64,000 nt of DNA, from contig NC_059438.1 of the NCBI RefSeq assembly GCF_021028975.2, positions 21,080,001 through 21,144,000 of the forward strand. Direction: 5' to 3'. Below the pieces are notes generated by a model. The model searched no databases and was not told where the DNA came from. It was given only the letters and a program-made list of their open reading frames with translations. Of the stretch, positions 9,001 to 39,325 are shown in pieces (the first letter of the stretch is position 1; the number at the start of each line of letters is the position of its first letter). The position numbers and the translations under genes are program-made. This stretch comes from Sphaerodactylus townsendi. Taxonomy: Eukaryota.

Positions 9001-12000
9001 GCATAGGGACAAACAAGGAATGGCCCATAGAATCATGATTTTTGTTATAGTAACTCAACAGAGGAAGAATCAATAGTTTACCACTATCAGGGAGCAAAGG
9101 GATTTCTTGGTCATAACTCACCTAGTCAGAGATGTGTTGTCCAAGAATGACGTAGCTTTAAAAATAAATTGAAGCATATATTAGTTGGGGAAATTAGCTG
9201 TACATAAGCATTACTTGCAAGAATTCATAAATGCAGTACACTGGTGAGGAGAACAGCACTAATCTATTCTCTTCTCTATTACGCTTCATAGGATTGTTAA
9301 CTTAGTTTTTTTATTTTTTTCAGCTTAAATATGAAGCTATACCTTAACTTCAAATACCCACCCCCGCGATCTTGACAGTTTACAACTCAACAGTTTCCTT
9401 CACATATAGTATCAGTGCAGGATATTATCAGGAAGCCAGATTTTTCTTGGCTGTTGTACAGCTGAAGAAAAACTTCTTGGAGCTACCTCCAATGGCAGAA
9501 TCAGAAAACTCTCACATACCTGTAGTAGATGGGAGGTGCTTATCCACAGCTCTCTCAAACTCAGACAGCCTGACTTTCTTTGAATTCCCACGTTTGAGCA
9601 GATTAGGCCGAAATGTCTCTTCAGGAATAGGGACAGTCAAACTTATATCTAGGTCGCTAAGAACAATAATATGGATCTTTAATGCTGGAAACAAAATGTA
9701 ATATCACCAAAAAAAAAAGACTTGTAACTCTCCTGACCTGTGGTGGCATGAAGGGGGAAAGAGTGCTCTTTCTACCTGGAACAGTGCCCTGAACATGGGA
9801 GTCTGTTTAGATTCAGAACTCCATCTTGTGACCACATCTAACCTTTTTGGGCAAGACTGCTTAAAACAATCTCCTCCCTCAACCTCATGCCTGGCACATA
9901 AGCAGGAATCAGCATTTGAATATGGACAACAGCACACCTGGAAGGAGCTAGTTCTCTTTTGTTTATTTCTTAATCTATTCAAGGGTCTTCCTCTGACTCA
10001 CCCTTCTCGTGACCAGCCATGTTGTAACTGCCATTAAGTGTCATTATCTGTTTATTGCCCAACACCTGGCAAAACCCTCAAGATAATGGGCCAACCATCA
10101 GGTCAATAGTCTGACACTCAAAACCATGACCTCACCTGGAACAGCAGGAAAAATCCTTTGTTCAAGGATTTCCTTTGCCTCAAGATACATTTTTCCCTAT
10201 GAAGGCATGCCTCAGACCCCAGTTAGGTGTTCAATGCTGTCACACACTACCTTGCTGTTTGATAATATTGTTCCATCAGTGCTGATCATCCAAAGCCTAG
10301 TGCTGGCCCATTATATCTCCTGGATGTCCACTACAAGACTGGTAAATATAATCTTTGATGTCTCATCCCTTCTCTCTATATATATCCAAAACCTGCCTTT
10401 CACCCCTAAATTACATCCTACGAAACCTCGTATGTGTGCGTTTTTACCCCCAGTAACTGAGTGACAGTGAGTGGATTTTTATTTTATTCCATTTTCTTAT
10501 TTTCTCAATAAAACCATTAATAAGAATGTACTTTTCTCTACTGCTTTCTTATAAACGCTCAACGTTACCCAACGTTCCTTAAGCCACGCTGAGTGACCTT
10601 GTGCTCTACAGCTAATGTCCCCAACCAAAGAGGGTCATTGCATCCTACCATTTGGGATAACAGGCTGTATTTCTGACAAGACTGAAGGACGAGATATAAG
10701 GAAATGGAGACAGAGAAGAGTACAGGCAAGAGGCACCTCTGCTGTGGAGGCTGTGGGAAATAGCATGTTTATGAGCTAAAGACTGTGAGAAGATAGGCCT
10801 GCTCAGAAACAAGGCAAGAAACTGTTCAATAATCCAATGATCAATGATTTATTCTGAGTGCATATGCTTAGGATTTCAGTCTCATGATGTACATACCTAT
10901 CATTAGCTTTCCTTGAAGGAAATACAGAAGGAAACTGGAATACGGTCTCCACTGGTTTGGGGGAATCAGTTTTTTCAGGAACAAGAGGGGAAACTACTGG
11001 TTCTGTTAAGAAAACATATGACAGTTTACAGTTCTACAGACATCACCAAGCAAGTTAAAATGCTAGCAATAAGTTGAGCAGGGGTAATATGTCTTTCTGC
11101 AGATGTCAAACAGATAATGTTACTGCCATGAAAAGGAATAAATTAGACAGTTTCTGTAAACAAAGATCAAACCTTTCACCCCAAAAGGTTTGCTGCAATA
11201 TTCTCCTTTTGAGCACTGAAGTGCACAAACTTAAGACTGTTCCAATTAAAAAAGGGAGTTGTGGTTCTATATTTAGAGACAAAATATAGGCTCAAAGATA
11301 AGACATCAATAGTCACTGGAGATCTAAAAGAAAGCTTCAAGATTTGAAATTCGAGAAAATATGGATCCTTTCATTTACAAATTTGCTCACCAGCTTGCCA
11401 GGCACAAATGCCACTGACAAGCCGTGAAGGAACCCTGCTCATCACTGGAGAAACCTTGCCCCAGACAGGGAAAGAGAACTCCTTTAGAATTGGCTCTGGA
11501 GTCTGCAGACTTAATTTTAAAAACTGGAAACGATGCACACATATGCTTTTCTAAGGAAATATGGGCAAATACTACTGGGGTGGCCAACCTATGGCGCTCC
11601 AGATGTTCATGGACTACAATTGCCATCAGCCCTTGCCAGCATGGCCAATTAACTCAAAAACTGGAGTTAGCATTAGCAGGGGTGGGACAATGAAGGTTTC
11701 TCCAAACTACAGATGTACAAGATGTTTGATGACTGATCAAGATTACTTGGAATTGATTATCCTACCATTCTCACTAAAATACTAACAAAACTGTAACAGG
11801 CAGAAATTAAAGCACTTCTAGGGATGCAATAAAATGTCTACACCACTTTTTTTGGCCATCAAGTTCAAGTTGACTTACGGTGACCCTACAGGGTTTTCAA
11901 GGCAAGAGACAATGGGAAGTGGTTTGCCATTGCCTGCCTCTGAGTGACGACTCTGGTATTCCTTGGAGGTCTCCCACCCATATACTTGCCACGGTCAGGA

Positions 12001-20140: not shown

Positions 20141-20638
20141 GTTTATATTATTGATGTTTTAATGTCAATTAATGGAAATTATACATATTTTCCTGTACAT
20201 AGTTGGGTCAATATCAGCACCCCGAGAATCAAATGTTTAAAGCATGTTTCTAGCTGTTATGAATACAAAATAAGTCTTGAAAGGCTTGCTGAAATCTTGG
20301 AAGCTGGGGAAACTATCTTCATTGATCCTTTCTCTTCTCTCTGTGGGCAAATAAAGTATGCAGAAGAAGTACTGTATGTGTGCTGTCAAGTCACAGTTGG
20401 TTTATGGTGACTCTGAAGGGTTTTCAAGGCAAAAGACATTCAGAGGTAGTTTGCCATTGCCTGCCTCTGCATTAGATGAGAGTTCTGAGAGAACAGTGAC
20501 TGGCCCAATGTCACCCTGCAGGCTTCATGTGGAGCAGTGGGCAATCAAACCTGGATCTCCAGATTAGAGTCCATTGCCCCTTAACCACTATACCATAAGT
20601 ATACGTATGCATATAAGCTTCATTTGTACAACCTATGC

Positions 20639-20786
20639 CAGGTGTAGGGAACCTGCGGCTCTCCAGATGTTCAGGAACTACAATTCCCATCAGCCTCTGT
20701 CAGCATGGCCAATTGGCCATGCTGGTAGGGGCTGATGGGAATTGTAGTTCCTGAACATCTGGAGAGCCGCAGGTTCCCTACCCCTG
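20639..20786. mobile_element. Palindromic hAT-type MITE (related subfamily)
   Basis: Hairpin, 8-bp TSD ACCTATGC. Confidence 0.9.
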
Positions 20787-21149
20787 ACCTATGCAGTTCC
20801 TTATAAGTGGCTTCCACACAGTATATTTATAATGAGTTGAAGTTGTTATAAATGAACTTGTTTCCTGGGAAAATGAGTTCATTTATAATGAATGAAATTC
20901 GCTATAAATACCGGTATGCTGTACTTAATCCACCATAGTCCCCTGAAAAGTTCAGATTTTGCACAATCTTTATGAACTGATCATAGCTATCTCCTAACAT
21001 TATTATTGTGCAACCTGACTATTTTTTTTACCAGGTCTGTCATAAGAAGGGAATTTTCACAGAACTCATTCTTGTGTGTCAGTTTAATGTTCTCACCAAT
21101 TAGAGGTTACTGACAGAACTTAAAGAACCTCTTATAACTGGAATATTTC

Positions 21150-22050
21150 TTTCACCTGGAATGTTGTGTACAGTTTTGGGCATTGCAAATCAAGAAGGAT
21201 ATTGACAAGCTGGAACAAGTCCAGAGGAGGGCAACCAAAATGGTAAAGCCTACAAGGAGACACTTAGGCCGTTTCCGCACGGCCAAAAGCAGCGACGCGA
21301 TGACGTCGCAAATTGCGACGCATCCCAAAAAAAGCGTTCACACAGACAGGCGGAGCTGCGGGCGTCCGCAGCCCCGCAGAAATGTGACGGTTCGCACGGA
21401 AGCGCTGCGGAAGCGGCGTCTCGCGACGTTGCGCCTGCGCACTTGCGAAGCCGTGCAGGCCCGACGCCATTTGTGACGACAGCTCCGTGGCGGCTGTTAC
21501 GCTGAAGTCGGCGTCGATCGTCACATGGGGAAAAAGAGTGGTTTTAAGCGTTTTCTGAATACACCCGTCTTAGCGCCCGGTTTAAGCGTTTTAGCGGCGG
21601 CGCGACTGCGCCCTCCGCCGCTGCCCGTGCGAGCATCTCGCTCCTGGCAGCTTCTTTTTCCGTTCGCGGCGGCGTCATATTTTGCCCACGTCTTGAACGG
21701 CCTTAGGAAACTGGGTATGTTTGGTAAAGAGAAGGTTAAGAGGTGACATGATAGTCATGTTTAGATATTTGAAGGGATGTCATGTTGGTGAGGGAGCAAT
21801 CTTATTTTCTGCTGCTCCAGAGACTAGGACCAGGAGTAATGGGTTCAAGGTGAAGGAAACATCAGGAAAAACTTCCTAACAGTAAGGGCTGTTCGACAGA
21901 CCTCGAAGTGTGGTGGAGTCTCCTCCTTTGGAGATTTTTAAAGAGAAGCTGGATGGCCATCTGTCAGGAGTGCTTTGATTATTTGTTTCTGCATTGCAGG
22001 GGTTGGACTTGATGGCCCTTGGGGTCTCTTCCAACTCCATGATTCTATGA
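21150..22050 (+). mobile_element. Degraded CR1 3' fragment interrupted by a Harbinger-type MITE
   Basis: [18 protein letters not shown] peptide and CR1 3' end CCAACTCCATGATTCTATGATTC. Confidence 0.8.
21267..21702. mobile_element. Young CpG-rich PIF/Harbinger-type non-autonomous element
   Basis: GGCCGTT...AACGGCC termini, TTA TSD; removing it restores the CR1 sequence. Confidence 0.8.
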
Positions 22051-22889
22051 TTCCCAGCCCCATTTCTTCTCATGACAACAATAATACACTATAGGAAATT
22101 TGGGAACATAAGTAAAGATACTAGTCAAGTACAGAAGTTAAGTAGCAAGGGTTTAAAAAAAAAAACCACAAGAGGAAGACAATGCAGTATGCTAAGGTTA
22201 TGTGCCCTGACTTGGATGGGAGACCTCCAAGGAAGTCTAGGGTAGCTATACAGAGGCAGGCCATATCAAACTACATTTCTTGTCTTGAAAATCCTATGAC
22301 TTGATGGTACACTGACACACATACACACAAACAGGATAATGTGGAACAGTGGTAATAGCATCTGAGACCTGTGCACGAATCAGTTCTCTGACCTATGAAA
22401 TGCTATAATCGAAGCCTGAGGAGAGGAACATTTTAATGACTTTCATAGGGGCTGGGTTTCTATCTCTCTCAAGAACCTAAAAATTACTGCATAAAACTAC
22501 TGCATCGCTTCCATTGGTATTTAATTTTGGGAGGATAATGTGTGTTAATAAATGTGTGATATAAGTAAAATGGAAACCACTGTGAGAATACCGAATAACC
22601 TGATGAATTAGTACAATACCTTTTTCAATTTCTTGGCATGTTGGTATTAGTGTGTACAAATACATGCACAAATACTCTTAATGGATTTACATAGTTACCA
22701 TGGTTTGAGTTGCAGTGTTGGCTTCTGAGATGAGGAAGACTGAGGCAGACCACATCAGCTACTTAGGAAGCTTATTTGATATATCTTGCAATTAGGTAAG
22801 TTATCAAGTGCATAACATAATCTTAAGAACATTTAAAAGTTGTTTCCAAACATGCATGCAAAGGTGATAGGTGCAAAATTATCTTCAAG

Positions 22890-23255
22890 GAGCAGCAGTG
22901 GTATAGTGGTTAAGAGAAGGTGCATTCTAATCTGGAGGAACCAGGAGAAAAGTTAGGAACAAAATCCACCAGACCACGGCCACACAGCCCAGAAAACCCA
23001 CCAGAACCAGGTTTGATTCCTTGCTCAATCCCACTTGAGCTGTGGAGGCTTATCTGGGGAATTCAGATTAGCCTGTGCGCTCCAACACATGCCAGCTGGG
23101 TGACCTTGGGCTAGTCACAGTTCTTCTGATCTCTCTCAGCCCCACCTACCTCACGGGGTGTTTGTTGTGAGGGGGGAAGGAAAAGGAGTTCGTAAGCCCC
23201 TTTGAGTCTCATTACAGGAGAGAAGGGGGGGATATAAATCCAACTCTTCTTCTTC
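22890..23255 (+). mobile_element. Squam3-like tRNA SINE with an inserted Penelope fragment
   Basis: Shared consensus and (CTT)n tail. Confidence 0.75.
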
Positions 23256-23975
23256 AAGTCACATTTGTGAAAGGGCTGTTGGTGTTAAAAAATGTCCTGC
23301 ATAATTTGGGAACCAAAGATGAAGAAACAATGTGGAACTCCTTCCCCAATGTCCAAATCTGTTCCTGCGGGATTCTATAAGTGTTCATGGATATCAGCAA
23401 GTTGCACATCTATAGCAATTTAATTATAAGTATCTGTATAACTGAACCTAGAGTGAATTCCATGCTTTATGAGAAATAATAGTTCCACCTCATTCTCTAG
23501 TGAGAAACTGGGTGTATTTAGTCCAGGGAAGGCTGGTGGACCGGGGTGGGTGAGAAATATGATTGCACTGTTCAAATTCTTTTATTACATTTTATATAGA
23601 AAGGGCAAAGATTTCTTGTCTGCTTCTTCAGAGGGCAAGGCTAGATCTAGTGGATGTACATTTCAAAAGGACAGATTTCTGTTAGATTGCAAGAAAAACT
23701 TCCTAATGATAACATGGTTGGTCAAAGGAGCCAATTACTTTGAGAAGGGTAAGTGAACTTTCCCTAACTGGAAGTTTTCTAGCAATGGGTAGACAGAGGG
23801 CTGTCACAGATGCTCCAGTTTCACAGTTACTTCACTGAGTAGCGTATCAGTATGGGGATTCAAAAATGATCTCCAAGATACTAGTCTGATATATGAACCA
23901 CTACACTATGTAGTTAGGTAAGTAGAATTGACTAATGAAATAGAAGTGGCTCTGAGTTTATTGAAGGGCCATAAC

Positions 23976-24138
23976 CAGAGCCGGAGTTATGCACAAGCAT
24001 ATTAAACTACACATTTGGGCCTCAGATTATGAAGATCTCTGAAAAAATTACTAAAAATTATGAAATTACAATTTTAAAAATCTACAAGGCCTCTTAAGCT
24101 TTACAGTTTACGGCTTTCAGTATGTCAGTCTGGCTCTG
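23976..24138. mobile_element. hAT-type MITE
   Basis: CAGAGCCGG...CTGGCTCTG termini; GCCATAAC/GCCATAAT TSD. Confidence 0.6.
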
Positions 24139-24324
24139 GCCATAATAAATCAGTTTTCCTAGAAGTTGCATGGCCACCATGTTTGAGCTGAAGCAATTCT
24201 CTAAGGACTCTCACCTACTGAGGTTCACAGCCTTTGAAAACATCTGGTTGAATAGTGCCTAACACAGAACGTATTTGCATATCTCAGAATGGCTGTGCCT
24301 CAAACAGTGCAACCCCATACAGAA

Positions 24325-24949: not shown

Positions 24950-25760
24950 CCGAGTTTCGTTGCGTGAAGGCAAACCTCCACTGGCAGACCATCGCCGATC
25001 AGTGGGTGCGCAAAAAGGAACAGGTTTTGTTTCCCGCCTCCTTCAGGAATGACCAGTTTTCAAAAAGAGAGAGAGAAGCTGCCCTTCAATCCCCCACAAT
25101 GCTTTGCGGTCGTCGAGCCCTGAAGCTTTTCCTCGCGGTGCATGAAGGGATGCGAAGTACATTCGTTTTCCAGAAGGGGCTCGAGAAAGCAGCGGGCTGG
25201 ACTGCCTTTCCCAGCATGCCGCGCGGCGGCCAAGGCGTGGCCCGGAAGAGGCGGGAGCCAGAAAGAGTGAGGGAGAGAGGGGCTCAGTCGGTTCGGGCCG
25301 CGCTCGGTGCCGCCGCCGCCGCCGCCATTAGCCGAGTGGGAGCTGCGAGGTGAGGGCCTCTGCGGCGCGGGAGGGGTGGACGGAAGTAGCGGGGCGGGCC
25401 TCGCGGCTCCATGGAGGTCGCGGGCTCGACTTTGCCCGCGGGGACGCTCCTGGGCGCTGTCACTCTCCCTCCTTCTCCCGAAAGGCCTCCGCGAGCGGGG
25501 AAGGGCGAGGCTGTGGGTGTGTCGGGAGCCGGGAGTGGGCCGTTTGGTGCTTTTCCGCCCCGCTTTTCACGGGCTGGTCGTGCGGACAGTTTCTTTGCGG
25601 TCTTATGCTGGAGCAAGCCTCTCTGTGTGTGTCGCGCTCTGTGTTCACGTCTGAACGTGTTACGCCCATCGGGTTTCCCGCCTGCGTTCGAGCCGTGCAC
25701 CCCACCACGTGCGCGGCTGGTAGCGGAAGCGCCCTTCCCCACACAGGCCCCTCCCCTGGT
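24950..25760 (+). promoter_or_regulatory. NUTF2 CpG-island promoter and non-coding exon 1 (donor after 25349)
   Basis: CpG island; ZNF143-type TTCCCAGCATGC, ETS CCGGAAG, GCCGCCAT YY1-like motif; GAG|GTGAGG donor. Confidence 0.7.
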
Positions 25761-28700
25761 GATTTAAAAATAATAACTGCACAAGTTTGTGTGTGTGCGT
25801 TAAGCTCCTTCAAGTCGCTTCCGACTCATGGCGACCCTGTGAATTAGTATCCTCCAAAATCTCCTGTCATTCACAGGCCTGGGTCGAGTCTTTTGCAGCC
25901 GAATTAAACTGGAGCCTTTGGGTGCCTTAAAGACGGATATGAGGTTGTTTCAATATAAGCTTCTATGAGTCGATATTCGCTTCATCCGACATTTCTGTGT
26001 TTCCTTTTAATGTTGCACGGGGTGTGTTAGGCATGACACTTGATCTCCCCACCCCATTTGTGAATCCTCCCTTCCAAAAATCCAGGGCGATGAATCACGT
26101 CAGGACTTCTGTTGGGAGCTGCCTGCTGGTGTGCCGTTGCGTTTATAGGACTTAGCTTTAAGACCCTGTAAGTGATGCTTCTTTCATGCAAGATACCAAA
26201 AGTACCCAAAAAATTGTCAGACCAAAGAACTGGGCTATGTTAAAAATATTGGACAAGGATCTGGGAGACCCAGCTTTGAACCCCCACTCAGCTATGGAAG
26301 CTTACTAGATGACCTTGGGCATGTCAGATTAATCTACCACAGATATATGCCAATAAAGGCTATGTATGTAATATACCACAAAGGGTTATACCACAAAGGG
26401 TTATAGTGAGGATAATATTGGAGGAGAGAAGGATAAACGAAGCAAGTAAATAAATGTGTAAAGAACTGTAGGGAGATGGAAACACCTGTGAGTATTTACA
26501 TTAGAAGATAGGTGTATAATGGGTGTCATTACAAAAGTTGTAAACTAGAAACAAAGACATGCCAGCTCCTTGACAAACCACCTTGCTTTATTGTGCTGCT
26601 GTCCATCTAGGTAAGAGAAGAAACTGAGGAAGTCTAACTTTTTCAGTTTTCATTCTCAAATTCTGGAACCAAAAATTCCCTTTTGATTTTCATCCTCATA
26701 TTCTGGAACCAGAGTTTTGCTTATGGGGATTGTCTTGGCATTAGTATGTGTCTTTCGGTGGAGAATTTTATCTTTTTCAAACTGGGATTTTAGTATGACT
26801 GACTTTGTCACAGACAGCAACTTTAGAACTGGACTTTTCCTCCCCAGAATGGAACACTGTTGTCTATGCTCAGTTCTGGCCCACATTGATGTAGTGTTGC
26901 TTTATATAGTTGTTCAACTGTAGACATAGTGATATATATATGCTTAATCATAAACAACACCCCAAAAAGGTTAATACAAAAAGGTTAATACAAATTTGTT
27001 CCCTTGGCCCATTCTGTTGCTGCTGCTGTTTCAAAAACCTTTATAATTTTTTTTAATTAGGGTTTTGGAAGCTATGAGATCCAGGTGAACTATGAGCATT
27101 ATACTTTCTTTATTGCTTTTGTTAGCATAAGTGAAATTGACCCAGGGAGACATTCCACTCCGCACCTTCAGTATTTTGATGTGCAGTATAAGGTACTTGC
27201 TAGAAGAAAATGCTAAAACTTGCTAGAAGAAAATGCAGAGGGAAAAGGTTGCTATGGCAGACTCTTTAGAGTTGTGAGGAATGGGCTTTAGATGTTCACG
27301 GCTTTGTTCAGTGGGCCAGGAGAGACTGTGAAGGTATTTCCTGAGCTGTGGCTCAGTGGTACAGCATCTGCTTGGCATGCAGAAGGGCCCATGTTCAATC
27401 CTCAGCATCTCCACCTGTATGTGTTCATAACTCGGGTTGAACAGTCATTGAGTCCGCAGGTTGTGTGTAAGAAACTGGTGTTGTGTGTGCTTTACTTATC
27501 GGTTCCTCCCTGCCAAAGGTTTACCTAGGACAGTTTGCATGGATCCAGAATCATGTTTATAGTCTGTTCAGCTTGTTTATGCATGCCAATTTTGACTGAT
27601 GCATCCCATATTTTTTTTCATGTCCCAAACATTAAGCATTGAAAGCGTAAGGAAATCTGCGACAGGACTGGAAAAAGCTGAGCCAGTTGGTTAGTCACAT
27701 TTCTAGTTTTCTGTCATCATTTTGTGCAGCATGGGAGAGAACATTCATCCATGTGAAACTCTCAGACCTTTTCAGCCTTCTGAACGGACTATGTTTCTAT
27801 GGTCACATTAATCCCAGATTAAAAATGGCCGTGCAAGTCAAGCTGTGTGTACTCGCGTTATGGCAGATTAGCTGGTTACCCAGAGTTTGCTTTCAGCAGT
27901 CTCAGTTCTCTGCATTGTTCCTGCTACAGCTGAGAAGTATTTATTGTCACCACACCTCAGCTCAGTGCCCTCTGCATGTGTTCTGAGATGGTCAACCGCC
28001 TCGCCTTCCACTTTTCTCCCGCTGCTTGTTGCAAATATAGCTGTGGTGCATTTATAGAGCATGCATGATAATATCCATGTCTTTTTGAAACACTCTTTGG
28101 GGGGGGGGATTTAATTTTAGTTTTAATTTCATGTATTTATATAGCAGTGGTCAGACTGCTTTGCAGACCTCTCGGTGGTCAGATTGCCTTGCAAAATTCC
28201 AACTGTGCCAATAGGGTCCCTGCCTCAAGAATCTTACAATCCAAAATTCAAGGGAAGCAGCAGCACGATGGGGAAAATGGAAGGAAGAGCAAACATGAAA
28301 AGTGCGTTCAGTTAAGTTGCGTTTATTTAGGCTTAGTTTCATTGTGAACTCCTTTCCAATTCTACTTGTACACCAAAGAAAAACCATGCACTTGTTTGAG
28401 TCCATCAATGAATTCAATGGATTCTGGTCAAGTCTTGTAAACGTAGCAACTGTAGTTGACCTCCTTCTCCTCCTTATTTCCCACACACACACACACCATT
28501 CCTATTTATTGTTTTTCTGAGAAACAGGGCTAATTCAGCTTCGGGCAGTTGTTTGGACACTCCTGCTTTCTTCTCCTTTTTGTCCTTAAGGTTATGTGGT
28601 CTTTCACTGGCAAAAGATAAGCTGTGAGCACAGTGTGGTGTCTTCATGACATGGGCCAGTATTGGTAATCTGTCCTGGCTCTGGAGATGACATTTATCTT

Positions 28701-29248: not shown

Positions 29249-29347
29249 ATGGGAGACAAGCCCATTTGGGAGCAGATTGGTTCTAGCTTTGTACAGCATT
29301 ACTACCAGTTATTCGATACAGACAGGACTCAATTAGGAGCAATATAT
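29249..29347 (+). CDS. NUTF2: NUTF2 coding exon 1
   Basis: [11 protein letters not shown]...LGAIY; GTAAGT donor. Confidence 0.97.
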
Positions 29348-32300
29348 GTAAGTAGTTCCATGGATGGGATTCCTTTGGTGGTTTTTTAATGGTTGCTCAC
29401 TGAGTTGCTGCTTAAAAACAAACAAACCAGGATCTCTATGTTTCCTTGGTAGAGAGCGCAAATAAACAGATCAATAACCCGACCCCCCACCCCCAGCAGT
29501 GCTTTGTTTTAGAATTACCTCCATTCTGTCTATTGGCCTGTTACCTCTAATGGTGAAGTATGGGAAAGATTGAGTATGCCCTCTGACATCTGCAGGACTT
29601 CTACATAAGTTTTTCTTGTAAAGAAACAGCATCAGCAAGGGAACAGCTGAGCTTTCATTTTCCCCATGGGGTCTTTGTGGAACTGGTTAGAATCCTTGGA
29701 GTAGGATCCAAAGGTATCTTTATTCTGATTGGAAGGTATCCAGATAGCTCGTAGTATTCAAGTATGTGGGAACTATTCCACTCAATTTTTTTTTGCAGGG
29801 CGGCAGCAGGAGAAACCCGCTGCCAAAAAAAGCAGATGGGTATCTTGGCACATATTGTCTCATTCGTAGGAATTAGAATTTTCCTTTTAAAAGGTGAAAG
29901 TTGAGATGTTGAAATTCCGCAGCTAATTCTACATATATTGGTTGCTGCCGGGATGTAAGAATCCTTGTATGTTGTATTACAGCAATGGTGATGTGAAGAA
30001 TATAGGATGGAACACATTTTAGAAAATGGGGTCATACCAAATGGTCTGTTTTCCGAAACAGGTTTTGGCTGTCTTTCCATAGAAATCTAAATACTCTTGG
30101 GGATCATTACAGAAAGAATTTCTGTCCTCCTATGGCCAGTGGATTTTGAAATAAAGGAGTGACGTCTCTGCAGTACTTAGACTAAGGGAAAGAGCTAACA
30201 CAGGGTTTCCAACCTTTGTGAGTCTGCAGACACCTTTGGGATTCTGACAGTATAGTGAACACATCCACAAAATGGCTGCTGCAGCTTACTTTCATCCGCA
30301 CAGTAAAGATCCTTGTGCTCTTGTGCACAGTAAAGATCCTGATGGCAGCTGCTGCCAAAGCAGTATTTTTTTAAAAAAATATATTGCACCAGTAATCAAA
30401 TCTCCAATAACGAATCAGAATCCCTTGCTTTGCCATATTGGGAACCCCTGAGCTAACAAATTCAGATTTTAAAGTTTACCAGTGTTGCTTCTTCCTCTAC
30501 TCATCTACCACCTTGGGATTTCTGTCCCTGTTTGAGACTGGGCAAGTAGCGTTGCTATATTTGGCAACAAACATAGAGAAGGGTCAAAGTGGTCCTCTGT
30601 CTGTTGAGCATCTTTAGGTAAAAGCGTAGTGCATCTGACCATCAGGTTAGCAACACTTGAGTGTCTTCAGAATCAAAAGGTTCAAGGGAACTGAATGTGC
30701 TTAGAACGACATGCATGCATTAGAATGCAGAAAGATTTGCAGTTTGTCTGTGTGGGTGTTTTCAGTGGTGGGTAAGAGGCAAAGGCATAGGTTTTTAGGA
30801 CTAGTGCACCTGGCTTTTGTAGGTTTTTCCCCAGAGAAGAGTTTTAACTATTTGGCCCAGAGCTGTGGTTTTGCACATTTGCTTGTGGCTTAGAAGTACA
30901 TCATGAGGCTCGAACTCCTGAGCTTTGGGACCCCTGAGCTCCCTTGGGCAAAAGAGGAAGCAGAGTTGCCCTGATTGTCTTCTCCTCCCCTCCTTTCACC
31001 AGTGGGTACCACTCATTCTGCAAAGATTCAGATGGCTCTCAGCCATTGGTAGTACAGGAAGCATGACCTTCAGCCATTGTCTCCTGATCCAAGTTGCCAG
31101 TGACCAGTCTAACCCCCCAACACGCACTCTCGCTCGCTCGCTTGTGGCACTGCCAGGCTACAGGAGCTCAACCAGCTGCAACTGGCACGGGAGTTCATCT
31201 GCTTCTGTTGTCTCTAGGGCCCACATCAGTCTTAGCTGAGACCCTGCTTTGATAGTTCATCCTGAAAAGGTGGATTCAGTTTTACAAGTGAGTCCCACTT
31301 CTTCAAGAAGCTTAGAAACAATGCCCTACAGTAGTCATATTTTGCCCTAGGAGGTTCTGCTAGCTGAGCTGTACATTTGTGTGTTCAATAAAGGGAAGTG
31401 CCTTCGCAGACTCCCACGTTTGAGCACCCCAAAGCTCAGAGAGATAGAGACAGTGTCAGAGATTCTGCCTGAACTTGGCAATAACTCCCTGCAGAGGATT
31501 TAAATGTGTGGGGAATTGCTAAGCATAGTGATACTACTGGCCACATTCCACTCTGATGCTGCATCAGTGAATTCTTTAAGTACCAGCAGGTGTGGATATT
31601 GTAAATAAAATAAAAATCTGGAAGCTCGAGGCTGAGGTGAATTGCAGCTGCTTAGAACAATTGGGTTATTTTTTCCATTGGTGTTGAATGACAATTGACA
31701 TCTGTGTTGTAAAAATGTTGTGGGAAAGAAGAATCTCAACAGCTGCCTTGAATTAAAAAAAAACAGTGATTGCTATACTAGGGAAACCACTGGAGTGCTG
31801 AAATCAGGTTGGTGGTTGACTAATAATTTGGTAAATTTGACTAAAAAATTGGTAAAATGTTACAGACTTCCAGTCCTCCTTAGTTTTTTTTCCCCCTTGG
31901 TATCTTCTTCCCCAGTATGTTTAATACTAAAATTTGCAGTGTAAATTGAAGTCGCTCGTTTTTTAACCCTGGCAAGGTTTATACCATGCAAAAGAAAAGT
32001 GGGGGTGAGGTGTAGCGAAAAACACCAAATATACAGAAAAGAAAACCTTTTACATCAAGACTGTGGGTTACAGCAAATAGACCAGCTCAGAACAAAATTA
32101 GGCAATGATGTGCTCTATATGTGCTCTATATGTGCTCCTGGTGGGCCACTGCAAGTAGCAGAGTGCTGAATTAGATGGACTCTGGTCTGATCCAGCAGGC
32201 TAGTTCTTATGTTCTTATTTGATAGTGTCTAATAACCCATAAAACTGACTGAAGTGCATAACATGCAGAATACATAAAAATGACACAAGAAGACAGAAGC

Positions 32301-35300
32301 GCACATATGCACACCAGCCAGCGAGCACAGGAAAGTTCTTGAAATATGACAAAACGTCTTCATCAGTAATGAGTTGTTCCAAGCTTGCCCATATAGGGTT
32401 GATAGAACTAAGCCAATAATTAATGTAAAGTGGCTTTATGATGTTTATCCAGGAAAAATTAGATGAGATAAGTAGCAATAATGTCTTCCAAAGCAATCAA
32501 CAAGACGACATTATTGCTGCTTAGCCCACCTAAATTTCTCTGGGGTAACATCATACACTGTTTTGTCAGCAAACCAGGTGAACTTCAGAATTTTCAGCCT
32601 TTCCACTTACCTGAGACTTACCGGCTTCCATTCTGCACGTCAGAATGTTTCACACATCCTGCCTTGTGACCACAGTGCCAGGACTATCATATGTCCTCAA
32701 TATTGCAAGGACTTTTTCATCCCAGCCAGTCTGGGATGAAGAAAGGGGGGAGCATTACACTTACAGGACTTACAGAATGCTTCACACATCCTGCCTTGTG
32801 ACCACAGTGTCAGGACTATCATATGTCCTCAATATTGCAAGGACTTTTTCATCCCAGCCAGTCTGGGATGAAGAAAGGGGTGGGGGGAGCATTACACTTA
32901 CAGGACTTTAGCAGGCTAGTTGTCTTGCATAGGAGATATTCCATCCCTGAGATATTTGATTCTTTCCCCTCCCCTCCCAACATGGTTCAGTCTTGCTTCT
33001 CAGCTGGTTTTCCTGTGTGTGGATGACAGGAGTCTGATTGTCAGATTGTAGTCTGATTGTTTTTTGTGAAGGACATCTTCTTTTCCAAAGCAGACTATGA
33101 CCACATCTGTCTTTCATCATTACAGATAGACGCCTCATGCCTTACGTGGGAAGGACAACAATTTCAGGGCAAAGCAGCTATTGTTGAAAAACTTTCAGTA
33201 AGTACCTGCAGTATTAATAGCTTCACACTGTGCTTCTGTTCAACCCTAAAACAACTTGTGATTCCATGCAAGAGTTTCTAGTTTTAGTTTTGGTATTTCT
33301 GGGAAGGTGGTTGGGGGCAAATTCATTACAAGGTATGATGCATTGGTTGTGCTTCTAATTGCCATGGCTCAGACAACGTCTAGCAATCCTAACCATGTTT
33401 ACTAAGAGAACAGTCCCATTTAAATCAATGGGATGTACACCTGTTTCTATCTGTATTGTAGCTGGGAAGGGCAGTGTACCGGGATGGTATTTCACAGTTC
33501 TGAATTCACAGTCCGCATTCTTTGCACATGCTGGGGTTGGGGCAGCAGGAAGGAAACAGTCATAGTCAGAATAGGCTGTGGTGGCGAACCTATGGCACTC
33601 CAGATGTTCATGGGCTACAATTCCCATCAGTTCCTGCCAGCATGGCCAATTGGCTGATGGGAATTGTAATCCATGAACATCTGGAGTGCCATAGGTTTGC
33701 CACCACGGGAATAGGGGGTAATTGTGAATTTCCAGCATTGTGGTTGACTAGATGACTCTTGAGATCTCTTTCAGCTCTATGTTTCTGTGCTGGTTTAAAC
33801 AAAAGATAAGTCAGCAGTTGATGGATTTGGGTGGTGGAAAGTGTGGTCTAGTCACAGATGACTTATGGCAACTCTATAGGATTTTCAAAACAAAAGACAG
33901 AGCTGATTTGCCATTCCCTGTTTCTGCATAGCAGACCTGGACTCCCATCCAAGTACTAACCAGGACTAACCTTGTTTAGCATCCAAGATCTGATGAGGTC
34001 AGGCTAGTCTGGTCAATCCAGGTCATGTCAGATGGATTTTAGGGACTTAAATTTCCATGTCACATCATGCTTTCCAAAGTCAGTTGCTGCTGCTATGTAT
34101 TTAAGCCTCAATCCAGCAATGTCAAAGCTCCTAAGCCCAGTTGAGTCCAATGGCTCTAATAGTGGTACATGGTGAAACCCAGCACACAGTTCATCAGCCG
34201 AATGTCTGGTACAAATGCTCTTAGTAATCTGATGTCTTGTCTGCACCATGTCTTGTCTGCACCATCTGCACCATTGTGATTCATAGTGTGCATCACTGGA
34301 CATCATGCATCCCAGCATTTAACCTGTGCTTACATTCCTGTAGTTGAATAGTATTACTTTTTACCTTGAGCAGCTAAACATTTTTGTTGTTGTTTTTAAA
34401 ATGTTAGTCTCTATGTTAGCTCAGGTCCTGCTATGTTTCTTGTTCCTGGGGGCTTCCTGCGCTTTCAGCCTCGGAGCCTGGCAAAGAGAATTATCAAGTC
34501 AAAAACGTTACCTGCGTCTGGAATGTGCATGTCTGTGTGACTGCCCTCTGCCCTTTTCCTGTTTGTGTTCCCTCCTTCATCTCCAGCCCTCTGGGAACTG
34601 ATGTGTGTGTGTCGACTCACTTCGGTAGTGTGTAGGGGGAGGGTGGGTCTGACGTATTTTTCCTGGGAACTTATAGTCTGTTGTTTGTAAGAGTCTGACC
34701 AGTTCAGACAATAGAGCTATCCTCTATTCCTCTGCTTGTCATCAATAAAACAAGAAATCTACTTTTAAAAGTACTGATTCCTGTCTGAGCGACTCTGGGG
34801 CTCCTAATAACCAAATCTAGGTAGGAAAACTTGCAGCTTGCAGGTAGGAAAACTCTAGCTTTCAAACTGCAAATAAATAATTAGAAATGGTGCTTCTCTA
34901 TTACTCAGTCTTATCTTCCCCTCTTCCCCTATTACAGAGCCTTCCTTTTCAGAAAATACAGCACAGCATCACAGCACAAGACCATCAGCCCACACCTGAC
35001 AGCTGTATACTCAGTATGGTAGTTGGACAGCTTAAGGTAAATGTTTCTTCCACCTCTGAATCCTGTGAGTCGCTGTTTGGAACCCCCATGTGAATGTTGG
35101 GGCACATTGTTCTGGCTGTGCAAGTGTTTTCGGGTCATGTAGGTTGGCGGGTGTGGGAAGAGCCAAATCCCAGTTGAGAGGAGAATGGGAATTTGAGCGT
35201 GGCTTGGCCTCAGGTGATTTATTTGTGAACTGTTGTTGTCACGAATACAAACTGAATACTGTTGTTGTCACGAATACAAACTGAACTGTTATCACGAATA

Positions 35301-38300
35301 CAAAAATAACATGAGATCCACCCCATTACAAAACCTCTAATAAAACCATTAACACAGTAAAAAACAGATCTTGCATCTAGACAATAACTGATAGGAGCAA
35401 TAATGAACAAAATGCTGTAGTATTACCCTATGGCTTGTTCCTAATGTCTCCCTATAGGTGTCTGTTGCCAAGGATATATGCAGAAGTGTCTGTCCTTTGC
35501 ATATACGCACTGGAACTCTCTCTTAACAGAATCCAGCCACAGCCGTGGTGCCCTGTGGCTTCTGATCATATATGTTCAGTAATGGTTTCTCTCCTGTTCT
35601 GCTCAGGCAGATGATGACCAAATTTTAGGCTTCCATCAGACCTTTTTGTTGAAAAGCCTACAATGTGCCTGGGTGTGCACCAATGACGTCTTCAGGCTAG
35701 CCCTCCACAATGTTTAGCTTCGTCCACCTCCTACCTCTGATCTTCGCAGTCCTCACTCAGTAAGAAGCACTCCGCTTGCTGCTGTCACCGTGGTTGGTCC
35801 TGCAGTCTGAACAGCATGGCCATGGCTTGTGTGTTACATAAGCAAGGTTGTGGCTTTTGAAGCAAGCAGGTGGCATTGTGTTGCTGAGAATCTGAGAGGT
35901 TCTGTGCACAGTGAGCATTTGTGTTCTCTGTGCTTGAAACCTTTTGATCTTCAGCTAGTTTTGTGTATAGTAAACGTGTCTGCAATTTTTCTGTTAGTTC
36001 AGGGATCATACTGAGCCAAAGGTAGGTTAGATACAAACCATGGTCTGCATGTGCATGGAGTATTTCAAGTTGTAAGATAACTCCCTGCTTCAAGAAGCTT
36101 ACCATTTAAGTTTTAACAGCACCAGGGAGGTAACAGAAAGGCATGCCCAGCAAACAAGATGTGAATGTAAGCAAATCCATTTTTACCAACCTGGGCCTTT
36201 ACGTCATCTGGCTACGAGAATGAGTAGGTTAAGCCAGAGACTTTGCATAAAAAGACCTCTTGGAATATACAGCATGAACCAGTGGCTCCCTGCACCTTGA
36301 TGTGGTTGCTAACAGGCTGGGAGAGGAACTGAAGTTGTGCGGTTGTATGAAATCCTTGCTTGTGTGTAAGGGCTTTACTTTTCAGGAATTACTACTGTAT
36401 TGCCTCTTCCATGTGTCTGTACTTCTTACAGCATTCTAATTTGTTCCATTGTCTGAACAGAGAGGGATTCCACACAATATATGTCCATTTATGTGACAGT
36501 TTGGTGTAATGGTTAGTCTCAGACTTGGATCTGGGAACCTCATTACAGACAGCATGGTGTAGTGTTTAAGAGAAGGTGGACTCAAATCTGGAGAACCAGG
36601 TTTGATTCCCCACTCCTCCACCTGAGTGGCAGAGGCTTATCTGGTGAGCCAGATTTGCTTCTGCACTCCTACATTCCTGCTGGGTGACCTTGGGCTGGTC
36701 ACAGTTCTTCAGAGCTCTCTCAGCCCCATCTGCCTCACAAAGTGCCTGTTGTGGGGAGAGGAAGGGAAAGGAGCTTGTAAGCCACCTTGAGTCTCCTTAC
36801 AGAAGAGAAAGGTGGGGTATAAATTCAAACTCTTCTTCTAACTCTGCACTCCGCCATGGAAGCTCATTGGGTTAGTCATGTGCTCTCAGCAGGTAGCCTA
36901 CCTCACAGGTTTGTTGCAAAGACTAATGGAGGAGAGGAGGACAATGTAAGCCCCTTTGGATCCCCATCAGGAACCAAAGTGGTATATAAATAATGTAAAT
37001 AAATATATGTGTATGGTGACATACACATTCTATGGTGATAGAAAGGAATGTGACAGGTTTGTATGTTAAGAAGTTATGTCTGGGTCTGTATTTGCCTTGA
37101 GAGATTCAGATTCCTTGGAGCCAGAGCAGAAACTCTCCAGTCCAGGGTAAAATCATGTTTGACTGTGAAGGTAATCCAAAAGCCTTCTGAAGATCTGATC
37201 ATAGTTTGCCTTCTGTTCTTTTCATAGACATAGTGTGTCCAGACACTAGGCTTGCGAGATTAATTTATCAACTATATATATTTTTATTGCATGAGGAACA
37301 ACTATGGAAGTTGAATTGTAGGACAGTATATTTGTTTCTTCTTTTTTCTAGAATGAAGATGGTAGTAATTCTTTTCTTCTCTTTTGCCTTGGTGTGTCTT
37401 CAAGTAAAAGTGTTATCTTTAGATTGGTTGAGGCAAATTTTGTTGTAATGTAGTCAGAAAGGATGTTCGGCTTATGTTCTTGATGTCCTTTCTCAGCCCC
37501 CCCAAAATTGTTGAGCCTGTTCTAGCAGAAACACACATCCCCCCACCTCCCTCAAATACTTGGATGAATTTTAGTTTCCAGAGCCTTTTATCCTTTTGTA
37601 CCTTATATGGCTTGTTCTCTTTGTCTGTGAGTAGATTTGTTTCAACAAGGCTACAAATGTGGCTTGTGGGAATAGAAGATTCTTATTTTGTAATTCATCA
37701 GCATTGGGAGGAAGTTTAGCTGACTTCTGCAAATGACAGCAAAACTTAAGTCTGTTTGGAACTAATTACCATTGGCCAAACCCAATACTGCTTCATCAGA
37801 TGGCTTGTCCCAGATCAACAAACATTGTAACTTGCTGTCTTCCCTAAACAGAGACATTCTGTAATGTAGTTGAATTTGTTACACAGATGATGGAGAGCCC
37901 CATTTACAATTCTCATACACTGACTGGAACCCCTTGATAGAATATTTAGATAAAACCGGAAAAAATATTGACTAATGGTTTTGATGGTTCAGGATTGTTC
38001 ATTAAGGTCCTATAGAGAAAAGTGATTTTTTATTAATGATGATAAAACTTAATTTCATTTTGATGCTTAAAGGCCTAGTGCTGAAAGTGTAGGGTTTAAG
38101 TGTTAATATTTGGTGTAGAAGAAACTGGAAATCTATATGAAATAAAAAATATAATTTGGTGAATTTCTATAATTGTGTATGTTTTGAACTTTGATGTTGA
38201 GACTGGGGAAAAAATACAATTTTTATCAACCAGAAGAGCAGTGTGACGACAGTATGCCCTGTACACCACCCCAACATGGAGAAACAGTGGCATGTAATAT

Positions 38301-38907
38301 AGCCCCTTTAATTACCAGATTGCCTCTGATCATCTGCAGATATTTTTCCCACCTGCTAGGAGTGTTTTTTGATGCACTGGCATTCAACACTGGTGTGTTC
38401 CATCCCAGCTTAAGACACAAAACCCTGTGTCTGCACAATCTTGATATAGTTGTCATGAACAAGTTGTGTTTTAAAAATAAGACATTTGTTTCTTGGGTCC
38501 ATAGTTATGATAAAGTTATTCCGATTTCTAATGATGTTACCACTTTCTTGGAACATGGGGCAGGTGCCATTTAGAACAGAGCGCAGAAGAGTTGCATGTG
38601 GTTCCCAAGCCACTAAATAATTATCACTGCTCTAGTACTCTCAGGTCTGTCCAGTAATTCTGCATCGGGATTGTAAAAGCATGTCAGAACATCAATTGTT
38701 CTTGATAAAGGATGTATGTTGGCAGGAAATTTCCTTTCTGGAATTTATCTACTGGGCACAGAGGTTCTAAAACTCTTTTCTTTCTCTTCACAGGCTGATG
38801 AAGATCCTATTATGGGATTTCACCAGATATTTTTATTAAAGAACTTCAATGATGCTTGGGTTTGCACCAATGACATGTTCAGGCTAGCATTGCACAACTT
38901 TGGTTGA
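29249..38907 (+). CDS. NUTF2: Nuclear transport factor 2 (127 aa); coding exons 29249-29347, 33126-33197, 34938-35036, 38794-38907
   Basis: Spliced translation [23 protein letters not shown]...[37 protein letters not shown]; all GT-AG, phase 0. Confidence 0.98.
30201..30450. mobile_element. hAT-type MITE
   Basis: CAGGGTTTCCAAC...TTGGGAACCCCTG termini, perfect 8-bp TSD AGCTAACA. Confidence 0.8.
32641..32909. repeat. Tandem duplication, 2 x ~132 bp
   Basis: Near-identical copies start at 32641 and 32773. Confidence 0.9.
33126..33197 (+). CDS. NUTF2: NUTF2 coding exon 2
   Basis: [24 protein letters not shown]. Confidence 0.97.
33576..33708. mobile_element. Palindromic hAT-type MITE
   Basis: Same family as 4409-4554; GAATAGG direct repeats on both flanks. 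Confidence 0.85.
34938..35036 (+). CDS. NUTF2: NUTF2 coding exon 3
   Basis: [33 protein letters not shown]. Confidence 0.97.
35607..35717 (+). CDS. NUTF2: NUTF2 alternative (duplicated) terminal exon [36 protein letters not shown]
   Basis: Polypyrimidine tract plus CAG acceptor, phase 0, intact frame, 26/36 aa identical to the canonical last exon. Confidence 0.85.
36549..36840 (+). mobile_element. Squam3-like SINE
   Basis: Family consensus, (CTT)n tail. Confidence 0.75.
38794..38907 (+). CDS. NUTF2: NUTF2 canonical terminal exon
   Basis: [11 protein letters not shown]...RLALHNFG*. Confidence 0.97.
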
Positions 38908-39319
38908 GACGGCATCCCCGAGGCACCTGTCATTTTTCTTTTCTCCTCCTTACAGATATTAATCACACTTATGGAACATTCCAAATATCATACACAAACC
39001 TGCAACACAGCAGCGCGTGGACGAGTGAGCGAGATCTCTGCGACCTGCCCTCTGAAGAGTTTTATGTTGTGTCACTAGAAGAGTTCCTTGTGCATGATGT
39101 TTGGAAGTTTAGACTTAGCTGCATTTGACAAGGGAAATGTGTGTCTTACCAGCATGCCTCGGGAAGCATCCATAACGCAAAAAAAGGTTGTGGTTCTATA
39201 CTGACAAGTTTCTCTAAATAACCCAAAGAAACAAAGAAAGGAGAGAAAAGAACAGCAGCCTGAATGCAGCTCAGATACTGGTTTTTTTTTTGTTCAGATG
39301 TTTCAGTGCTACATTATAC

Positions 39320-39325
39320 AATAAA
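39320..39325 (+). terminator. NUTF2 proximal polyA signal (distal candidate at 41123-41128)
   Basis: AATAAA ~410 nt after the stop codon. Confidence 0.5.

Follow-up and report, generated by a model that had tools for sequence, protein, structure and literature searches.

The gene NUTF2, which encodes nuclear transport factor 2 (NTF2), carries two copies of its last coding exon in the gecko Sphaerodactylus townsendi. We analysed a stretch of 64,000 nucleotides (nt) from this species (NCBI RefSeq assembly GCF_021028975.2, contig NC_059438.1, positions 21,080,001 to 21,144,000 of the forward strand), hereafter the window, in whose numbering all gecko positions are given. Between coding exon 3 and the canonical last exon lies an alternative (alt) exon which, judged from its sequence here and in other vertebrates, is a tandem exon duplicate of great age, preserved for about 450 million years, and not a chance similarity or a dead copy. 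The reading we favour, with a probability of about 0.8, is that this ancient duplicate serves as a cassette exon, situated between exon 3 and the canonical exon and equipped with a stop codon of its own, and that it encodes a 126-residue NTF2 isoform. The reading builds on the homology of the two copies, their conservation, purifying selection, annotation of the same exon in other species, and its use as a cassette in skate and cyprinid messenger RNAs (mRNAs), all of which were observed.

An ancient second copy of the last NUTF2 coding exon

NUTF2 lies on the + strand of the window and, as read there, has four coding exons, all with AG/GT borders. This is the four-coding-exon structure of vertebrate NUTF2/NTF2 (Pfam PF02136), so that the gecko locus can be taken as its orthologue, and proteins with the alt end also carry PF02136 in the precomputed Pfam assignment. 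The parts of the gene are listed below.

29249-29347, + strand: NUTF2 coding exon 1, residues 1-33, reading frame open from the ATG, with donor GTAAGT
33126-33197, + strand: NUTF2 coding exon 2, residues 34-57 including E42, with AG acceptor and GTAAGT donor
34938-35036, + strand: NUTF2 coding exon 3, residues 58-90, ending in phase 0, with acceptor ...ttacag and donor AAG/GTAAAT
35587-35606, + strand: acceptor of the alt exon, pyrimidine tract and CAG
35607-35717, + strand: coding part of the alt exon, 36 codons for NTF2 residues 91-126, plus TAG at 35715-35717
35718-35759, + strand: untranslated tail of the alt exon, 42 nt from stop to donor, giving a whole exon of 153 nt
35760-35765, + strand: predicted 5' splice site of the alt exon, TCA/GTAAGA, presumably used in the gecko
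35766-35835, + strand: conserved intronic block 3' of the alt exon, with AGCATGG at 35813-35819 and then GCTTGTGTG; candidate splicing enhancer
38794-38907, + strand: canonical last coding exon, residues 91-127 (37 residues, 38794-38904), plus TGA

The first AATAAA after the stop of the canonical exon stands at 39320.

Both copies follow exon 3 in phase 0, are homologous and lie next to each other, as expected for a tandem exon duplication. The intron from the end of exon 3 (35036) to the alt acceptor measures 570 nt. The two peptides share 26 of 36 residues with no indel, the alt frame holds no stop, and 13 of the 26 identical residues are written with a different codon. At the nucleotide level 77 of 108 bases are identical, and the 31 differences are distributed 7, 4 and 20 over codon positions 1, 2 and 3. 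When both exons were aligned with MAFFT together with 300 nt on each side, similarity was confined to the coding part and the flanks were unrelated. A first-pass annotation of the window had already described the second phase-0 acceptor 570 nt past exon 3, its intact 36-codon frame, and these identities, codon differences and unrelated flanks; all were reproduced when we read and aligned the sequence.

To place the exon in a wider context we fetched the loci of six birds, the skink Lerista, the chimaera Callorhinchus and the turtle Chrysemys, which together with the gecko window make ten genomic loci. The order exon 3, intact alt exon, canonical exon was the same in all nine fetched loci, and the last 20 nt of the alt acceptor are identical in gecko and skink and similar in turtle, birds and chimaera. 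Furthermore, the ratio of non-synonymous to synonymous substitution rates (dN/dS, Nei-Gojobori) of the alt exon was 0.088 between gecko and skink (7 synonymous vs 3 non-synonymous changes), 0.08-0.10 between gecko and turtle or bird, 0.14 between gecko and chimaera, and 0.05-0.26 over all computable species pairs, with a synonymous rate (dS) among sauropsids of 0.2-0.6. The alt peptides of turtle and bird are identical at 36/36 residues, and frame and length (36-37 codons) are preserved across the loci and transcripts examined. At the same loci the canonical exon gave a dN/dS of 0.02-0.2, its cross-species comparisons having been made with the sequences of other species only. We also built a maximum-likelihood tree from the unique exon peptides (24 alt, 45 canonical; lamprey was the outgroup), in which a single branch with support 98/91 divides the alt class from the canonical one; since the alignment has only 37 columns, this split is the only meaningful part of the tree. 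The first-pass annotation had proposed an old duplication held by purifying selection and had named frameshifts, stops or a dN/dS near 1 in orthologous copies as signs to the contrary; none of these was found in the fetched loci, and the intact copies, the dN/dS range and the tree split all bear the proposal out.

Two other origins were considered and rejected. A retrocopy fragment does not fit a homology that begins exactly at the acceptor, with no exon 3 attached, with unrelated flanks and with a syntenic position in nine other loci, while chance similarity is contradicted by the protein matches across species, the dN/dS values and the split in the exon tree.

A single tandem duplication of the last coding exon of NUTF2, predating the divergence of cartilaginous and bony vertebrates, would explain these data, and a second NTF2 isoform appears to have been kept under strong selection in most jawed vertebrates outside mammals. 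In this regard, we found no trace of the alt exon in the dolphin locus, the one mammal locus examined, whose last intron is 1.7 kb long, and neither the cluster look-ups nor the word-indexed protein searches returned a mammalian protein ending in the alt exon. This suggests, from that one dolphin locus, that the exon was lost in at least some mammals.

The first-pass annotation had left open whether the exon is annotated in any species, and it is, widely. When the 36-residue alt peptide was searched alone against 1.84 billion representative proteins, it matched proteins ending in the alt exon type and not in the canonical one, and all listed members end in this way; full-length protein queries were database proteins of other species. 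RefSeq entries named "nuclear transport factor 2 isoform X2" carry the alt end in Lacerta agilis (XP_033014822.1) and Hirundo rustica, in the amphibians Bufo bufo (XP_040265059.1), Bufo gargarizans, Lithobates pipiens, Eleutherodactylus coqui, Ambystoma mexicanum (XP_069511472.1) and the caecilian Rhinatrema bivittatum, and in the fishes Carassius gibelio, Amblyraja radiata (XP_032892140.1), Scyliorhinus canicula and Callorhinchus milii. In addition, UniProt entries with this end cover 74 passerines and 37 other birds (e.g. A0A663EH55, Aves), Podarcis (A0A670IK40) and the bichir Erpetoichthys. The annotated isoforms with the alt end are 126 residues long in many species, and they support the earlier proposal of a second NTF2 isoform with a different C-terminus. 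Their last exon is of the same type and in the same position as that of the gecko, with 29-34 of 36 residues equal to those of the gecko copy where species were compared directly; there is no essential difference from the gecko exon, and none of these entries has a described function.

The gecko itself is represented by the 235-residue UniProt entry A0ACB8EAI7, which matches the window without a difference in the peptides of exon 2, exon 3 and the alt exon. Its N-terminal 143 residues come from 25099-25350, 26081-26128 and 27061-27195 (the first piece maps at 100%), and this N-terminus is doubtful, as it looks like a mis-joined prediction that skips the true first coding exon at 29249-29347. 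Full-text literature searches on NUTF2/NTF2 splicing and exon duplication returned no description of the alt exon. Because it is annotated in RefSeq and UniProt for dozens of species, S. townsendi included, the alt exon is already known as a sequence feature. What our analysis adds is the age of the exon and the selection on it, its end at 35759, its reading as a cassette, the spacing of its stop with respect to mRNA decay, a conserved downstream element, its absence from one mammal, and the position of class-specific residues within the predicted dimer interface. The result is an ordinary one for annotation, with the exon end and the cassette reading as the gains, and gene models that end at 35717 miss the true 3' structure.

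Two observations made during these searches stand apart from the above. In a 190-residue NTF2 model of Microtus ochrogaster, the part encoded by coding exons 2-3 occurs as two tandem copies; this has nothing to do with the alt exon and probably reflects a duplication in the assembly or the annotation. Also, about 12% of the sampled words of 35450-35900 occur in 14 sequencing runs from two other organisms, perhaps because relatives share the conserved alt exon or its flanking sequence.

Residues and predicted structure of the alternative NTF2

Residues 1-90 of canonical NTF2 (rat and human, PDB 1OUN, 1GY6 and 1A2K) are common to the alt isoform, and identity to 1GY6 is high over residues 1-125. 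To define what distinguishes the two ends we compared the unique sequences of the alt class (24) with those of the canonical class, and the positions that differ are given below.

Position 95: Q in the alt class, P in the canonical class
Position 97: L in the alt class, M or I in the canonical class
Position 102: T or I in the alt class, M, S, I or V in the canonical class
Position 110: G in the alt class (C in gecko), D in the canonical class
Position 117: E in the alt class (D in gecko, tinamou and chimaera), D in the canonical class
Position 118: V in the alt class, M in the canonical class
Position 126: V, L, I or F in the alt class, where it is the last residue, F in the canonical class
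Position 127: absent from the alt class, G in the canonical class

The gecko substitutions listed by the first-pass annotation (P95Q, M97L, I102T, changes at 107-110, M118V, F126V and the missing G127, with D92 and D94 kept) are as it stated. D92 and D94 are invariant in both classes, and in an alignment of alt-isoform proteins W7 is invariant and E42 nearly so. E42, D92 and D94 are the acidic residues that bind Ran, and W7 belongs to the FxFG site. The alt isoform is thus like canonical NTF2 in keeping D92, D94, E42 and W7 and in being predicted to dimerise through the same beta-sheet face, and unlike it in the class residues at 95, 97, 102, 107-110, 117, 118 and 126 and in being one residue shorter.

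An AlphaFold2 model of a lizard alt isoform has the NTF2 fold, with a mean predicted local distance difference test score (pLDDT) of 83.6, and in it the alt exon supplies the last two long strands (95-108 and 111-125). We also predicted the complex of chicken canonical NTF2 with a bird alt isoform, which scored 0.82 against 0.01 for the best control, a result that may recall the solved homodimer and does not address affinity. For comparison, 51 of 78 solved complexes and 2 of 108 mismatched pairs attained this mark. Contacts agreed between runs to at least 81%, and the pLDDT of the partner was at least 88. The predicted interface comprises, on both chains, residues 100, 102, 104, 106, 115-116, 118, 120 and 122-123, and since 102 and 118 are among them, two class-specific positions sit in the predicted dimer interface. 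M97, in turn, we take to line the cavity that receives Phe72 of Ran. PDB entries 1JB4 and 1JB5 are the NTF2 mutants M102E and M118E. Taken with the models, these positions make a functional difference in dimer stability or pairing, and in the fine geometry of the Ran pocket, plausible.

Probable splicing of the alternative exon as a stop-carrying cassette

Three assembled transcripts bear directly on how the alt exon is spliced. Two Logan contigs (SRR24105884 and SRR24105885) encode exactly the Amblyraja isoform X2, and one (SRR25395558) encodes exactly the isoform X2 of Culter and Carassius; all three are intronless spliced mRNAs in which exon 3 is joined to the alt exon and this in turn to the canonical exon. 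The skate mRNA continues for 42 nt after the alt stop and then enters the canonical last exon, and the cyprinid mRNA does so after 51 nt. Because these mRNAs run on into the canonical exon, we read the alt exon as an internal cassette with its own stop. Alternative use in mature transcripts was hence seen in skate and cyprinid, species other than the gecko. The two exons are not mutually exclusive in the strict sense, as alt and canonical exons co-occur in these mRNAs, and exclusivity is obtained at the protein level by way of the stop.

The genomic loci carry the same arrangement. A GTAAG donor stands 42-47 nt past the alt stop in 10/10 of them, giving exon lengths of 153-158 nt; the predicted gecko tail measures 42 nt, against 43-47 nt in the other genomic loci (skink, chimaera, turtle and birds), and the 153 nt of the gecko exon equal the length of the alt exon in the skate mRNA. 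Since this donor is conserved past the stop, we place the gecko alt exon at 35607-35759. The bounds 35607-35717 proposed earlier are right at the start, whereas the position given as the end is that of the stop codon, and the exon probably extends to 35759.

The first-pass annotation had instead described an alternative last exon with its own 3' untranslated region (3' UTR), that is, splicing from 35036 to 35607 followed by polyadenylation somewhere past 35717. The stop codon of the alt exon would suit such a terminal exon, several annotations, among them A0ACB8EAI7 of S. townsendi, end their coding sequence there, and an AATAAA is present at 36998. However, from the alt stop to that position (1.28 kb) the gecko has neither AATAAA nor ATTAAA, and this first signal lies inside a short AT-rich tandem repeat (36982-37010), just beyond a stretch resembling a short interspersed element (SINE). 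Moreover, ten loci spanning about 450 million years have kept the GTAAG donor 42-47 nt past the stop, and the skate and cyprinid mRNAs run on into the canonical exon. We therefore set this part of the earlier description aside and consider a terminal exon unlikely, though such use may coexist with use as a cassette.

A second alternative is a regulatory "poison" exon, whose inclusion would only lower the amount of productive NUTF2 mRNA, through nonsense-mediated decay (NMD) or at translation, the peptide having no function of its own. A stop-containing cassette next to a strongly conserved intron is indeed what conserved poison exons look like, and the rather low dS among sauropsids hints that there is constraint at the RNA level too. 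Against this, differences between species are overwhelmingly synonymous, the class-specific residues are fixed across the 24 unique sequences, and the frame and its length were kept in every locus and transcript. A stop within about 50-55 nt of the last exon junction normally escapes NMD. A poison exon would be expected to have its stop farther than this from the junction, and here the distance is 42-51 nt, the 51 nt of the cyprinid being borderline, so that the alt mRNA should not trigger NMD. The kept spacing together with the coding constraint argues for a protein isoform and not a decay substrate as the product, and we hold the poison exon to be quite improbable.

The least probable of the alternatives is a silent relic, in which the exon is kept elsewhere and is no longer spliced in the gecko lineage: gecko residues C110 and D117 are unusual among squamates, and the listed sequencing runs, considered below, offer it some room, but the gecko retains an intact acceptor, frame, stop and 42-nt tail as well as the GTAAG donor and the AGCATGG block, its comparison with the skink shows the low dN/dS and the excess of synonymous changes given above, and D117 also occurs in the alt exons of tinamou and chimaera.

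Several points weigh against a stop-carrying cassette that encodes a distinct isoform. The gecko donor has A instead of G at -1 (TCA/GTAAGA), and its use is argued from conservation. Cassette use was seen directly in two lineages, skate and cyprinid, and among the runs listed as holding the gecko stretch none is recorded as RNA. In addition, models of Bombina bombina (X2 and X3) and Antrostomus carolinensis use other donors, inside the alt exon or right after the codons for HN at its end, before continuing into the canonical exon, either in frame or with the frame shifted; these models could be genuine minor isoforms or errors of gene prediction, and on account of these donors splicing may vary between lineages. 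At the protein level, the score of the predicted complex may simply reproduce the solved NTF2 homodimer, and the roles attributed to positions 97, 102 and 118 derive from the rat NTF2 literature and from the PDB mutants, 102 and 118 being also in the predicted interface.

If the cassette reading is right, the alt exon would be included between exon 3 and the canonical last exon in the gecko as well, its stop would end translation after 36 alternative residues to give the 126-residue isoform, and the canonical last exon would then become 3' UTR. With the stop 42 nt before the last junction, and 42-51 nt across species, the mRNA would be expected to escape NMD and to be stable and translated.

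The intron 3' of the alt exon is conserved between gecko, skink, turtle and birds well past the donor. AGCATGG is invariant in these species at +47 to +58 from the donor (the gecko GCATG being at +55) and is followed in the gecko by GCTTGTGTG; in the chimaera, TGCATG stands at +33 and AGCATG at +65, with the same GCTTGTGTG after them. All ten loci thus have a GCATG at +47 to +65, as in exons controlled by Rbfox, within a block whose conservation extends from chimaera to gecko. Rbfox enhancers classically consist of GCAUG placed in the proximal downstream intron, and UG runs bind CELF-type factors. Tissue-regulated inclusion through this candidate enhancer, an Rbfox-type GCAUG together with a UG-rich run, is a reasonable hypothesis, and the conserved GCAUG block may make inclusion regulated and possibly tissue-specific. 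The papers found to name both NUTF2 and Rbfox were unrelated, judged by title and abstract.

Tentatively, the alt exon may represent a regulated second isoform of non-mammalian jawed vertebrates that has gone unstudied because at least some mammals lost it. Such an isoform would combine a stop kept for about 450 million years within some 50 nt of the last junction, allowing the mRNA to escape NMD, with tissue-specific inclusion driven by the enhancer, and its changed dimerisation or Ran binding could follow from the class-specific residues, those at 102/118 and 95/97 altering the balance of monomer and dimer or the import of RanGDP.

Comparison with known exon substitutions and other features of the locus

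Substitutions derived from tandem exon duplication have been catalogued for human genes (Nucleic Acids Res 2021;49:8232, PMC8373072). Most of these events are ancient, with both exons present in fish for 100 of the 111 mutually exclusively spliced ones, and C-terminal substitutions are said there to arise by alternative poly(A) use or by exon skips that shift the frame (PMC8373072). NUTF2 is like this class in that adjacent homologous exons give homologous alternative protein ends, in its origin at the root of jawed vertebrates or earlier, and in the conservation of both copies. Unlike the catalogued cases, NUTF2 is absent from the text of that paper and the one mammal examined is without the alt exon. 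Its mechanism also differs from the routes described there, because the alt exon is read as a stop-carrying cassette that leaves the canonical copy in the 3' UTR.

With NMD-coupled poison exons, such as those of SR protein genes, NUTF2 shares the stop-containing cassette and the highly conserved flanking intron. It departs from them in the short distance from stop to last junction and in the purifying selection on the peptide, which together point to a protein isoform as the likely product. The alt exon could thus be a clean example of an exon swap made at the protein level, by a stop-carrying cassette just inside the distance that is safe from NMD.

NTF2, which returns RanGDP to the nucleus, tends to be regarded as one protein with hardly any variation. 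In the alt isoform the differences are concentrated around the Ran pocket and on the dimer-forming beta-sheet, and the isoform would accordingly offer a natural variant, tested by evolution, with which to study the influence of NTF2 dimerisation and Ran binding on nuclear transport.

Some further features of the locus touch none of these points. Rfam gave no match across 35000-38700. With Tandem Repeats Finder, applied to 32000-39000, a 29-nt tandem unit in 2-2.7 copies was seen at 35229-35304, in the intron that precedes the alt exon, and the intron before coding exon 2 holds a 132-nt unit twice, with 94% match, at 32641-32908, which yields a spurious repeated open reading frame. The segment 36480-36840, between the two exon copies, resembles a SINE-type repeat of squamates, as judged by reading. 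Lastly, EDC4 lies directly downstream of NUTF2 and on the same strand in the skink (20449-24197 of the fetched locus), the chimaera (29668-31213) and the dolphin (9114-9725), so this neighbourhood is conserved.

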